In this document: in pieces, positions 7,407 through 44,466 of the stretch | How the letters are laid out: every line of letters begins with the position of its first letter | How positions within the stretch are numbered: position 1 is the stretch's first letter | Source: Lepidodermella squamata | Taxonomy: Eukaryota > Animalia > Gastrotricha | Direction: 5' to 3' | Length of the DNA: 64,000 bases | Assembly (NCBI GenBank): GCA_047495785.1 | Contig: JBLDXI010000002.1 | Location: forward strand, 1,488,001-1,552,000 | The notes under the pieces: generated by a model | The model's input: only the letters and a program-made list of their open reading frames with translations | Databases searched by the model: none | What the model was told of the DNA's origin: nothing | Made by a program: the position numbers and the translations under genes

Positions 7407-9000
7407 CGTCTATGGATTAAGACGCTAAGATCTAAACGTAAAAAGTAGTATTTTATGTCTATCATATGGCCAGAAACTAGAAAAGATGAGTCAATTTCTA
7501 AGATGGTCAATAGCAGTTTGTGGCGTATAGTTCGTAGAAAACCAAACCACCAGCACTTTCAATATCAGCAAACAGCATACTCAGCATTAATTATCGGCAA
7601 CATGTTCAGCTCAGAATCAAGTAAGTAGTAAATGCAAAGTCACAGTCATCATCATCATCATCATTATTGTTCAAATTCATTTAGTTCAGTAGCATCGCAA
7701 ACTCCACTCACACTTGGCTTGCACATCATCAGCAATCAGCGAGTAAAAGAAAGTCGAAATGCTTTGAAGGTGAGATGCGAAGAGATAGAAATAGTGAACG
7801 CCGCTGCCATGTGTATTTGTCGCAAAAAGGTTGCGATCAGCGCAGATCAGATGCAGCTTCCACTCCGAAAACCCCCGAAGAGCGCTGACCGCATCACCCT
7901 CTCTTTACGCGTTGGCCGGCAATAAAATAAAAAATTTATTCGGTGCTAAAATTCATTCATTTATAAGAAAATGTTCTATTTTAAAAAATTGGTCTTTTTT
8001 AAAGTTCTAAAACTAATGAAGTACACGTTGTATTGCTTCGAAATCCATCTAGATTTCTCTATGGAGCAACACAGCAAGACCAACGAGACGTTGTAAACAG
8101 GGCAAAAAACGTAAAGAAATGTGTATGTGTGTCTCACGCATTTTACGACGCTTTTGTTTTGCCTATTTGAAACGACCTGGCTAGAGGTCATATGCTGTCC
8201 TTGTCCAATTGTTCGGAGCTACCCGTCCACGGTTTGTGAACGAGACATGAGGCTTTTGAACGATTTACAGATTTATTTAGACTTGATGTGTTACGTGTTG
8301 GCATTCGCTTCCCCATACTACACCTTGCGCGAATACTAGAAGCTCACTGGCGTCGGCTGATGTTTACTGTCCAAGTGTGCCCAGGATAAATTTTCGTTAG
8401 CAGTTAGCAGCAGCTACGTCTTTCGTTGTTTATTTGAAGCTTGTGGTGATGAGTATGAATACACTTTAAAAAGCCGGCTATCTAATTTTGGATGGTTTCT
8501 TACTCACCCCTTCCCCCTATTTTACGCGTTTCTGTCGTTTTAAGCATATTTAATGCTGAGGATATTCATCTCGTGCTTAATTGTGACCATCGACTGTATT
8601 ATATCCTTACACCTTCTAGTGAAGGCTGAGTTATTTTCCCATCTCGGCTTACGTTGCACAAAATTCCTAAAAATTTTTCATTTGATGTCTCGGCCTGACA
8701 TGCTTGGCACGAAGAAGCCTGGATCACATGGCGATCGCCGAATTGTTCGTAAAGATTTAAAATAATTATGGATTATCTACGTAGGCGCTTCAATGGAGCT
8801 CTTATCTTAGCACAAACGCCCACACACAATATTGCACGTTAGCGATACCTTTCTCGAAATCATTTATCATTCCCGGCCGCGTTTTTTATCTACAGTAGAT
8901 AAGTCTTGACTTACTTATATTTCGCGGTGCTTCATCATTCATTCATTTGATTTTTCTTCCAACTTTTGTTTGTAGTAAGTTATTTGACCTACATTTTCAA

Positions 9001-9733
9001 ATGTCGTGCTGCGACACTAAGAAAACTGCGTCTTGCTCGTGCAACCCGTGCAAGTGCAGCCCTTGCAGCTGCGGAACCTCTTCCAGCCGCCCTCTTCAGC
9101 CAGGCCAGCCGGCACCTAATTTCAGCGGAGTCGCTGTTGTCAACGGAAAGTTCCAGAACATTAGCTTAGCTGACTACAAGGGCAAATATGTCGTATTCTT
9201 CTTCTACCCGATGGATTTCACCTTCGTCTGCCCAACCGAAATTATTGCCTTCTCTGACCGCGTTGAGGTACGACATTCATTTAAATCATGCCCCGTTGAC
9301 AATCTTCTGACTTTTCTTATAGGAGTTCAAGAAATTGGGCGTCGAAGTGATTGGTTGCTCGACTGATTCGGAATACACCCATCTTGCCTGGATCAACACC
9401 CCTCGCAAGCAGGGTGGCCTTGGTGATCTTAAGATCCCACTCCTTGCCGACAAGAATGGAGCTATTGCTCGTTCATATGGTGTTCTCAATGACGAGGGTG
9501 TCGCGTTCCGTGGCCTGTTTGTCATTAACCAGAGCGGAGTCTTGCGCCAGATCACCGTCAATGACATGCCAGTTGGTCGCTCTGTCGACGAAACTCTGCG
9601 TTTGATCCAGGCGTTCCAGTTCACCGACCAGCACGGCGAAGTCTGCCCGGCCAACTGGAAACCCGGAGAAAAGTCGATGAAGGCCGACCCGAGCGGTTCC
9701 CGAGAGTACTTCGAGAAGGCCTCGTCGAAATAA
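9001..9733 (+). CDS. PRDX: Typical 2-Cys peroxiredoxin with a Cys-rich N-terminal extension (exons 9001-9267, 9323-9733)
   Basis: [13 protein letters not shown] peroxidatic motif, GGLG motif, GEVCPANW resolving Cys, C-terminal YF motif. Confidence 0.97.
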
Positions 9734-10045
9734 ATGCTGTAATAACTAGGACAGCAACCGGACCAATAGTTTGACTGAAATCATGATAGACTTGATTAGT
9801 GATAAGCCTCCAAGTTCAATTCAGTTTTTCCATCCGGTGAGCATAATTCTGAGTAGCTTGGTTGAATTCATGAAACCCGTGATTTCTACACGCTTCCGCT
9901 GCATGAAGCTGTATTTTCTCCCCGCAAATTTGATTGCCAAATTTATTATATTAATATGTGAAGCAATAAAAAATAAAATTTATTAGTCCCTGCTAAAATG
10001 ACTTGGTCTTGTTTTTGTTCTCCAATGTCGTAGTGCACAAATTAT

Positions 10046-12036
10046 ATGAAAATCCTGAACAGAGTTGCTGTTTTCAATAATACCATCTGGCGAAACCTTT
10101 CGAGAATGATTCAGGCGTCGAAGTGGCTAAACGAAGCTGTTGATACTGAAACCGGCAAAGCATTCATCCGAAGCGTAGATGGCGACGAAAGGCTGAGAAT
10201 TTCCCTGAAATTTATTCGCCCGGAGAATAACGGCGTCAAATTTTTCAATTTCGAACGCCTGAAAGGCGAAAATCTGGCCACAACTTTTCAACGCATGGCC
10301 AATAACATTCAAAGGGAACTGAAACCAAGCGCTAAAAAGACGAAGGCTGATAAGAAGGCTGCCAAAACAAACGGTTGCGATGATAAGGAAAAGACCCAAC
10401 CGGAGAGTGAGAGATCTACCGTGCGCCTTTCATTCAGAGATAAAATTTGTCTTTTCAGGTGAAACGAACATTTCGGCTATTGATATCGCGTTATTTAAAA
10501 ACGGTGAAAAACTCGATGCGTCGCAAGTGACCAACGGCGAGGCGTGGGAGGCAGCGACGGAGCTGAAAATAGGCGATACGGTGTATCCCCTGGCAAAAAA
10601 CTACCCGACAATCGTGCTGCTTCAAGTTTGCGACACACCCATCGCAACGTACCCCGTTCCGGTGAAGTGCCACCTCGAATTCGCTGATCAAGCCGACTGC
10701 TTGTTTGAATGGTTTGTCTCGAGTAAAAACAAGGAAAGCTCCGATCTTGTCGGAGTTTTGCATAAAAATTGGAACAAAGTTGCGGAGGGTTACTCGTACA
10801 CACCTAGCGAGGCTGAGCTAGGATGCCATTTACTGCTAAAATGCACCCCATTTCAGCGGGGTCCAGATGGAAATATGATAACTGGTGAATCTCAACTATC
10901 CCAATCTTTGCAACCTGTGGTCTCAGGTCCGAAAGAGTGTCCATTTGAAAGGAGGCAAAATAACCATCTTCCGAAATATTCATCTGAGGAAGAAAGAAAG
11001 TAAGCCTAGACAATTTAGATTGTTCGTTTTTATTCTGTTTTATGCTTGTTTAAGGCAAGTTTTGCGGGTGGTGTCGTACAATGTTCTTGCCGAATGTTAT
11101 ACTGATATGGCTGGGACTCAAGAAAATCTCTTCCCATACTGTCCCGAAGAATTTCTCGATTTCAAGTACCGGAAAATGTTACTCTTAAAAGAAATACCTG
11201 GTTACCAAGCCGATGTCATATGCCTTCAGGAGGTCGACCGACACGTTTTTGAGGACGATTACCGTCCAGCGTTGAGATCAGCTGGTTACGAGGGTCAATT
11301 AACGCTGAAAGCTCGTGAAGTCAAAGAAGGAATAGCCATGTTTTACCGGAAAGATCGGTTTGAACTCATCAGTGTTAATTCGCATTATATCGGCGGAGTT
11401 CTGGACAAGGACCCGGATTTTGCGGATTTGAACGAGCGAATCTCAAAAGTTCCCCACATTCGAGAAACGTTTGTAACCCGGTCGTCAGTCGTTCAATTTT
11501 CGCATTTGATCGACAAAACCAACAACCGCCATTTGTTAGTGGCTAACACCCATTTATACTTCCATTGGTCTGCTGATAACATCCGGCTGCTGCAAGGCTT
11601 CGTTTCAGCTCGGTTACTATCGCGTGCAAAAGCTGAAATTGTGAAGAAATTCGGCGTTGAACCTAGTATTTTATTTTGCGGCGATTTCAATTCGGACTAC
11701 CGATGTGGAGTTTATCGGTTGTTTACTAAAGGAAAAATTCCGGGAAATTTCAACGAATTTTACCAGGGCGGTAAACAGAATTTCATCCCGGATCTAGGCG
11801 ATATGATTCAGACTGATTTGAAGCTGTTTTCGGCATCTGGGACCCCGGAATACACGACTTTTGTCTCAGCCTTTGCGGCATGCATCGACTACATTTACGC
11901 CGAACGTGAAAAATTCGACGTTTTGAACAAGCTGCCGATGTATGAGGAGGAGGAATTTCTGCCGATGACTGCGTGTCCGAACCAAGTTTTCCCGAGTGAT
12001 CATTTTGCGATCGTTGTCGATATGAAATACAAGTGA
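10046..12036 (+). CDS. PDE12: 2',5'-phosphodiesterase 12 (EEP/CCR4-like) (exons 10046-10406, 10459-10999, 11055-12036)
   Basis: RVVSYNVLA, LFPYCP, DVICLQEVD, ANTHLYF, CGDFNS, CIDYIY and FPSDH motifs; N-terminus resembles a mitochondrial presequence. Confidence 0.92.
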
Positions 12037-43400: not shown

Positions 43401-44466
43401 TGTTTACGAATTTTCGTGGATTACTAAAAATTGGAATTATTATTGATCAGGCCGTTTCCGGAAATCTAAAGAAATGAAATTTGCGTTCAGCCTTCCAAAC
43501 CAGAATGTTGTAACTCGAATCAATACTCGAAATTTACAGAGCATTCGAAAAAAATTCAGGAAAATTGTTAAAATTCAATTATCATTTACATTTTCTTACG
43601 GAGACTGGTCAAATTTTTGAGCTCAAGTTAACGTTTATAGTAGTTCAGTTAGAATTTATAGTTTAGAGGTAAAAGATCCAGATTTCTGGAAAAATTACAA
43701 ATGAAAATTTTGAATGAATGAAAATTATGAATGTTCTGGTTATCATCCAATACTAATTTGTCTATTTTAATTGATATTTTAGCTGTTCGTGGATTTGCCT
43801 CCGCCGTACTCTGAGAAGCCTTCGACGACTGTCACCCCCGGGGCGGATAGCTCGAGTCAGTGGGCAACATCGTCGACGTGGAGCGCAGCTAACCAGCTGG
43901 GCGTGACGTGCCAACCCGGCACATCCGGAACGTCCTCGATCTCGCCCCATCATCAAGCTAGCAGTTCCAACCGACTACCGGACAACTTCCTAACCCCGTC
44001 GCCGGACAATCACTCGTCACCCCCGTCGACCTCGCCTAATCAACAGGTTCAGCCGACCGAAGCTGGCCACCAGGCGTACTTCGCTGTCGGGGTTGCGTCG
44101 AACTACGGCACTCAATCGCGTCAGCAGCGCCGGGTTGCTAACCAAAGTTTGTTGACAACCCAGCGGCAGGCGCCTCAAATTCAATCTCATCAAGCGTATA
44201 CAATCGAGACGCAATTCTACCAACAGCAACAGTATCCACCCGTTTCGGCAGCTACCCCGTACGCGGGCGGCTACGACCCGGCTTCGATGACCCTGGTCGC
44301 CGGCCATCAGCAGGCGGCCGCTTACTACTACCCGGCCCAGACTCAATCTGCTCAATTACAGAACCCAGTCGCGTTTTACCCACAGTCACAACAGGCGCCT
44401 TCGACATCAACGCAACAACAACAACAATCGCAGCAAAACAACTCAGATCCAGCTGTGTATTTTTAA
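37486..44466 (+). CDS. Notch: Notch-family receptor, reduced (14 EGF, 2 LNR, HD, TM, RAM, ANK, PEST); exons 37486-40581, 41934-42126, 42700-~43164, 43783-44466
   Basis: Signal peptide; EGF repeats; LNRs; TM followed by KRVRTKTWFPPGF (RAM WFP); ankyrin repeats GPDGLTPLMLA, ESALHLAARY, DGTTALILATRL, GRTALHWAAAVDN, EQTPLFLACREG; PEST FLTPSPD. Confidence 0.95.

Follow-up and report, generated by a model that had tools for sequence, protein, structure and literature searches.

An expressed peroxiredoxin gene that encodes a cysteine-rich, metallothionein-like N-terminal tail

Peroxiredoxins (Prx) are now seen as peroxide receptors that hand oxidation on to partner proteins, and metallothioneins are the textbook reservoir of zinc that is set free by oxidants. 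In some peroxiredoxins, extensions of the N-terminus reach into the ring that the protein forms. The N termini of human Prx4 are directed to the inside of the ring, and an invisible 40-residue extension probably reaches its centre (PMC3234919). The single Cys of this extension makes inter-dimer disulfides; the C51A replacement left both activity and decamer stability unaffected, and neither the ordered structure nor activity depends on the extension (PMC3234919). For the 29-kDa Cys-rich peroxiredoxin of Entamoeba histolytica (EhPrx), cryo-EM revealed density at the decamer centre that perhaps represents the flexible residues 1-23, and the extension runs on into an alpha-helix, Cys24-Glu39, that bridges monomers; among Entamoeba Prx, differences in the length of the N-terminal extension correlate with catalytic efficiency (PMC13532219). 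In the tardigrade protein RvPrxL, the N-terminal region is disordered, makes contacts inside the ring and holds the oligomer together in 100 mM H2O2 (bioRxiv 10.64898/2026.04.10.717662). The pore of the Prx ring has already been put to use in bionanotechnology as well, via artificial N-terminal His-tags.

The gene described here lies at 9001-9733 on the plus strand of a 64-kb stretch of DNA, the whole of which was analysed and is called the window below. It has two exons and a 225-aa product, and its features are collected in Table 1.

Table 1 Features of the tailed peroxiredoxin gene (positions are those of the window)
Feature	Positions	Strand	Description
Polypyrimidine tract and 3' splice acceptor	8950-8975	+	tttttcttccaacttttgtttgtAG; 5' leader joined there (cDNA contigs)
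5' UTR	8976-9000	+	25 nt, without ATG; A at -3 of the start codon
Exon 1, coding part	9001-9267	+	89 codons: tail, linker and first half of AhpC-TSA
Cys-rich, metallothionein-like tail (codons 1-29)	9001-9087	+	ends (CSCNP)(CKCSP)(CSCGT)-SSS; present in mRNA
Three CxCxx pentads	9034-9078	+	six Cys as CxC-x2-CxC-x2-CxC
15-nt tandem repeat	9039-9067	+	TRF: period 15, 1.9 copies, 85% matches
Intron	9268-9322	+	55 nt, GT..AG; 55-nt skip in contigs of X8, X9 and X2
Exon 2, coding part	9323-9733	+	136 codons and TAA
3' UTR	9734-9998	+	AATAAA at 9965-9970 and 9972-9977; poly(A) added at about 9998

Judged from its motifs, the product is a catalytically intact typical 2-Cys peroxiredoxin of the Prx1/AhpC subfamily. 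Both exons match the AhpC-TSA family (Pfam PF00578; exon 1 with residues 34-88, E=4.5e-16; exon 2, E=1.5e-17) and the C-terminus matches 1-cysPrx_C (PF10417; E=2.9e-15), in each case above the curated cut-off. Exon 1 also aligns, from residue 28-36 onwards, with solved Prx1, Prx2, Prx4 and a Schistosoma thioredoxin peroxidase (E ~1e-24). The active-site motif PxxxTxxC is present as P70-x3-T74-x2-C77, with the codon of the peroxidatic Cys77 at 9229-9231, and it is accompanied by the conserved Arg in FRGLF (residues 151-155) and the resolving Cys197 in EVC197PA (codon 9644-9646). The protein also has the eukaryotic motifs GGLG (residues 120-123) and YF (218-219), and should be an active, hyperoxidation-sensitive and decamer-forming peroxidase.

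Residues 30-225 align end to end with animal typical 2-Cys Prx (Prx1/Prx2), and the catalytic motifs are common to both. Among the best 120 of 4,968 matches, the closest database protein is P0001, with about 75% identity across the aligned core. For the part of exon 1 that aligns, identity to the closest database proteins reaches 81-83% (83% for P0001). The N-termini differ: cytosolic Prx1/2 start a few residues ahead of PAP-x-F, whereas the tailed Prx has 28 more residues, among them 8 Cys. In the alignment with P0001, the tail has the look of 28 residues inserted straight after Met-Ser.

The tail has its Cys at positions 3, 4, 12, 14, 17, 19, 22 and 24, as a CC pair followed by three CxC pairs. 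Residues 1-29 comprise 8 Cys (28%), 8 Ser, 3 Thr and 3 Lys, with neither aromatic residues nor His. A preliminary description of this DNA had reported 8 Cys in the first 24 aa (CC and three CxC) and a Ser/Lys/Thr-rich composition lacking aromatic residues, in frame with the Prx core and with no other Met before FYPMDF. Translation from ATG 9001 reproduces the Cys pattern exactly and agrees with the rest, including a stop-free frame.

When all six frames of the 64-kb window were scanned for stretches of 25 aa without a stop and with at least 7 Cys, the tail and one more site were the only ones returned. Because the scan finds the tail alone, bar the antisense of a CAG/CAA repeat, the tail is not a chance open reading frame. 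The second site, at about 44,380-44,460 on the minus strand, is a TGT/TGC-rich spurious open reading frame, antisense of a plus-strand CAA/CAG (poly-Gln) repeat. Since 9039-9067 is a 15-nt tandem repeat, the CxCxP pentads grew through local duplication.

Transcript evidence was drawn from Logan contigs of four runs (X1, X8, X9 and X2) aligned to 8500-10050, and the contigs that cover the tail stem from three studies. We take the runs to be cDNA libraries, though the run records make no mention of RNA, because X1 holds the SMART cDNA adaptor. In a 926-nt contig of X8, positions 8974-9265 are fused straight to 9321-9946, and contigs of X1 and X8 have a loose A20 behind 9998, downstream of both AATAAA signals. 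The intron is the sole joint found in the Prx contigs, and no joint touches or removes the tail. Given that the contigs are unbroken from 8974 via the Cys-rich codons into the spliced core, the tail is present in the mature mRNA. The transcript check of the N-terminus that the preliminary description had called for is thus provided by cDNA of all three studies. At least one further 2-Cys Prx paralogue is expressed (X8, X9), with contigs that match only the conserved 9214-9240 and 9558-9591. This paralogue has a different upstream sequence, so that the tail is a feature of one paralogue and not of every Prx gene.

Genome matches of the X1, X8 and X2 contigs begin only at 8974/8975. Ahead of 8974 the X1 contig reads TCTGCGAATTTGATTTGTGTCTA and the X8 contig GGGGTGTCTA (GGGG+TGTCTA), while the genome at this 5' junction reads ttttgtttgtAG and then TAAGTT (tttgtAG/TAAGTT), with a polypyrimidine tract followed by an acceptor AG at 8974-8975. 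The 25-nt leader was not found in the entire 64-kb window when its 20-nt core was searched with 2 mismatches allowed. Given this absence, the leader of the Prx mRNA is probably a trans-spliced leader, attached to an unpaired acceptor that lies 25 nt upstream of the ATG. A conventional 5' exon further upstream in the window was considered and ruled out, as the leader core is absent even at 2 mismatches. A literature search found no paper containing the 3' part of the leader.

There is no ATG among the 50 known bases that precede ATG 9001, and the next in-frame Met after M1 is M71, within the active-site motif FYPMDF. Initiation at M71 would remove part of the Prx fold. ATG 9001 is the sole usable start, and because the next Met lies in the active site, no functional tail-less isoform can arise by alternative initiation.

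Two observations concern the surroundings of the gene. Upstream, X1 has low-depth contigs (~5-20x) at 8517-8811 with two joints between opposite strands, 8591/8693 and 8668/8773. Inverted repeats that might account for these joints were sought at 8400-8900 and none were found; the contigs could be chimeras from library construction or come from a weak unannotated transcript. Downstream, a gene at 10046-12036 encodes a PDE12-like 2',5'-phosphodiesterase/EEP nuclease (matches to PF21171 and PF03372). It begins 48 nt past the Prx poly(A) site, a spacing that is operon-like, and has an acceptor-like tcgtAG at 10029-10033, 12 nt ahead of its ATG at 10046; contig coverage is zero at 10008-10050.

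A relative allows a first look at how the tail evolves. Run X2, from another study and a differently labelled organism (organism B), provides further pieces along with one spliced contig that spans 8975-9418. Over the covered coding sequence, organism B differs from the reference at 14 sites, of which 12 are synonymous, one changes the stop codon from TAA to TAG and one is the replacement T26S. Within the tail all 8 Cys are kept, and there are 3 synonymous changes in addition to T26S, which is conservative. The resulting pN/pS of the tail is about 0.09 (Nei-Gojobori site counts), a value that comes from a single low-depth contig and one close relative. With pS set to its gene-wide value of 0.107, neutral evolution would predict about 7 replacements in the tail, against 1 observed (P = 0.007); when the tail alone is used, the probability of one or no nonsynonymous change is 0.03. 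These figures, from one low-depth contig of one relative, are suggestive of purifying selection on the tail.

Beyond organism B, the tail was sought in several collections. It is absent from the best 120 of 4,968 Prx matches in an index of 5.8 billion proteins. The active-site motif is present in 118 of these best 120, and 37 of the 118 have an N-terminal extension of at least 15 aa; a Cys cluster occurs in the extension of only one of the 37. This protein, P0031, comes from a Tara Oceans metatranscriptome (ERR1712050) and is an animal-type, Prx1-like protein with CCNCCC immediately ahead of a second start, MSVK; where it truly starts is uncertain, and it could be a second, independent Prx with a Cys cluster or a translated 5' UTR. 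Word-index searches with the tail region gave zero candidates, in a weak test that missed P0001 despite a shared 9-residue PLQPGQPAP. Patterns including MSCCDTKK and NPCKCSPC found no tail-bearing locus among the 80 loci listed from JGI metagenome contigs; the two with the longest N-terminal coverage among those listed (L074 and L022) have stops or unrelated sequence at the position of the tail. The statement in the preliminary description that animal Prx1/2 lack such an extension is therefore in keeping with the closest peroxiredoxins, those among the best 120 of 4,968. The look at related taxa for the same fusion that it proposed finds the fusion in organism B and in none of the best 120 matches. 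We found no report in the literature of a fusion between Prx and metallothionein or of a Prx with a metallothionein-like CxC array, and no paper on the CNPCKC motif.

With residues 1-40 as the query, an exhaustive phmmer search returned only two matches among 1.84 billion cluster representatives, both with E ~7e-4. The representatives stand for clusters at 50% identity, so that a tailed Prx could sit behind a tail-less representative. Both matches are environmental: P0121 has 244 aa (locus L001, 37-771) and P0122 has 101 aa. They contain 2 or 3 copies of a module C-x-C-N-P-C-x-C-x-P-C-x-C-G-x-S with acidic spacers between the copies, and in the alignment of five module copies the invariant residues are the six Cys, one Pro and one Ser. 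Neither protein matches a Pfam family above the cut-off, and metallothionein families appear only below threshold. From the pattern of their repeats, P0121 and P0122 look like an uncurated modular thionein-like family.

By composition, metallothioneins have more than about 15% Cys arranged as CC, CxC or CxxC, no aromatic residues and little or no His, and this is the composition of the tail. Metallothioneins share with the tail the CC and CxC pairs, the richness in Ser, Lys and Thr and the lack of aromatic residues and His, and the tail is about as long as a single metallothionein domain. In modular metallothioneins the module is repeated between spacers, as is the related module of P0121 and P0122. 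Metallothioneins are small free-standing proteins, however, whereas the tail shares its frame and its exon with an enzyme core of 196 residues.

Profile comparisons fall short of a family assignment. The best Pfam match of the tail is Metallothio_Euk (PF12749), whose score of 11.6 bits (E=0.29) lies below the cut-off of 22. A comparison of language-model features places the tail nearest to the Atlas cluster Metallothionein/Metallothio_5, at 0.83, which is below the Atlas's reliable level and a lead only. Solved metallothioneins gave no match at E<=10 with either the tail or the module profile, and among PDB sequences the shared-module profile found only an integrin EGF-like fragment (E=0.3). 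The tail is thus thionein-like in composition and motif, without demonstrable homology to a known family. The metallothionein signature proposed in the preliminary description stands as a pattern of composition and motif, and no curated family matches it significantly. No core motif of the MRE, ARE or HSE type occurs in the 1 kb upstream of the gene, and the promoter therefore gives no support for regulation by metals; for the MRE core TGCRCNC, which may not be the core used in this taxon, 8000-9000 has none, compared with 0.55 per kb on average across the window.

What the tail might do can be considered in the context of the ring. With the leader joined at 8975 and translation from ATG 9001, each molecule bears a 29-residue tail with 8 Cys. 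By analogy with published structures, the N-termini would face the central hole of an (alpha2)5 decamer, where ten tails with 80 thiols may crowd the pore. Arrays of this kind, with a CC pair followed by CxC-x2-CxC-x2-CxC, supply the ligands for Zn/Cd or Cu(I) thiolate clusters. We therefore lean, tentatively and at somewhat less than even chances, towards a tail that acts as a metallothionein-like thiolate module, in which soft metal ions would be bound close to Cys77, the residue that reacts with peroxide. Oxidation of the tail, whether direct or passed on by the sulfenate or disulfide of the Prx, could then cause release of the metal, cross-linking of the ring, or both. A coupling of peroxide sensing to Zn/Cu release, or a built-in reductant on the decamer, had been proposed in the preliminary description and is likewise hypothetical. 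Against this reading, Cys-rich low-complexity matches can be convergent. A bolder version, which we consider unlikely, is that the decamer is a redox-gated metal cage. In this scenario the thiolate clusters of the tails would lie in the pore, perhaps shared between subunits, peroxide sensed by Cys77 would be relayed to them and Zn or Cu released, and (CxCxP)3 would be an undescribed thionein module that is also found in repeat proteins of other eukaryotes.

Rather than binding metal, the tail could be a purely redox-active segment whose thiols form disulfides, within or between subunits, inside the ring; it might stabilise the decamer under oxidative stress, serve as a sacrificial thiol buffer or hand oxidising equivalents on from Cys77-SOH. 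The inter-dimer disulfides within the ring of Prx4 (PMC3234919), the preservation of the RvPrxL oligomer in 100 mM H2O2 (bioRxiv 10.64898/2026.04.10.717662) and the correlation between extension length and catalytic efficiency in Entamoeba (PMC13532219) would all fit such a role, as would purifying selection on the tail. Yet 8 Cys in CxC pairs far exceed the needs of cross-linking, CxC disulfides are strained, and a Ser/Lys-rich composition without aromatic residues is the pattern of a thionein, not of a disulfide knot; in Prx4, moreover, C51A altered neither activity nor the stability of the decamer (PMC3234919). We regard a metal-free tail as rather unlikely. S-palmitoylation of Cys3 and Cys4, perhaps extending to more Cys as in cysteine-string proteins, might instead tether the Prx to a membrane. 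The CC at 3-4 is followed by the basic Lys7 and Lys8, presumably resembling the dual-palmitoylation N-terminus of the GAP-43 type, and the animal-type P0031 has its CCNCCC in an N-terminal extension as well, albeit with an uncertain start codon. Such a lipid anchor seems improbable, since the next six Cys, along with Pro and Gly, make up a regular (CxCxP)-type array that is common to the modular thionein-like repeat proteins, no hydrophobic residues lie close to the Cys, and the N-termini of the decamer face the pore, an awkward position for membrane insertion (PMC3234919).

The tail may also have no function, as a recent low-complexity extension that arose by the 15-nt tandem duplication after the start codon and is tolerated because it dangles in the pore. 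The tandem repeat itself, the lack of a tail in the closest Prx relatives (best 120 of 4,968) and the dispensability of the Prx4 extension for ordered structure and activity (PMC3234919) are all consistent with this origin. A neutral extension is difficult to reconcile, however, with a pN/pS of 0.09, with the retention of 8/8 Cys in the relative and with 1 replacement seen where about 7 were expected, and we give it little credence. That the tail is not made at all, being spliced out, skipped by use of another start or produced by an assembly error, was suggested only by the suspected GTAAGT donor at 8975, from which splicing might have removed the Cys-rich segment. This suspicion has been overturned: contigs are continuous over 8974-9265, the AG at 8974-8975 is an acceptor, genome and contigs of three studies agree, the 55-nt intron is the only joint found, and no in-frame Met lies between M1 and M71. 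The absence of the tail from the protein is thus extremely improbable.

If the metal-thiolate module is real, a natural Prx-metallothionein fusion that is expressed and under selection would be a ready system in which to test the coupling of peroxide sensing to metal release, and it would show a functional use of the pore of the Prx ring. A redox-gated cage, if true, would have peroxide sensing and metal signalling or buffering hard-wired in one particle. Should the tail prove inert, it would be a minor, lineage-specific curiosity.

From the perspective of Prx architecture, it is useful to set the tail beside the extensions described to date. Prx4 and RvPrxL have lineage-specific, disordered N-terminal extensions in the ring interior, much as is proposed for the protein studied here. 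The extension of Prx4, however, has one Cys behind an ER signal peptide and is not thionein-like, whereas the tail has 8 Cys; RvPrxL, also not thionein-like, is a basic, nucleic-acid-binding protein that has a KRKR nuclear localisation signal and lacks catalytic activity. N-terminal extensions of Prx rings already offer two kinds of cargo, a Cys that makes disulfides in Prx4 and a segment that binds nucleic acid in tardigrade PrxL, and the tail would represent a third. A further likeness is EhPrx, the different Cys-rich Prx N-terminus that the preliminary description had mentioned for Entamoeba and that is indeed published (PMC13532219). Its N-terminal extension is likewise Cys-rich and is flexible at residues 1-23. 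By its published description, the extension of this unrelated protist consists of a segment and a helix, in contrast to the Ser/Pro/Gly-rich, regular CxC array of the tail, and we assume from the taxonomic distance that the two arose independently. Prx N-terminal extensions that use the pore are already known from Prx4, EhPrx and RvPrxL, and the one from Entamoeba is Cys-rich; the metallothionein-like CxC array appears to be what is new.
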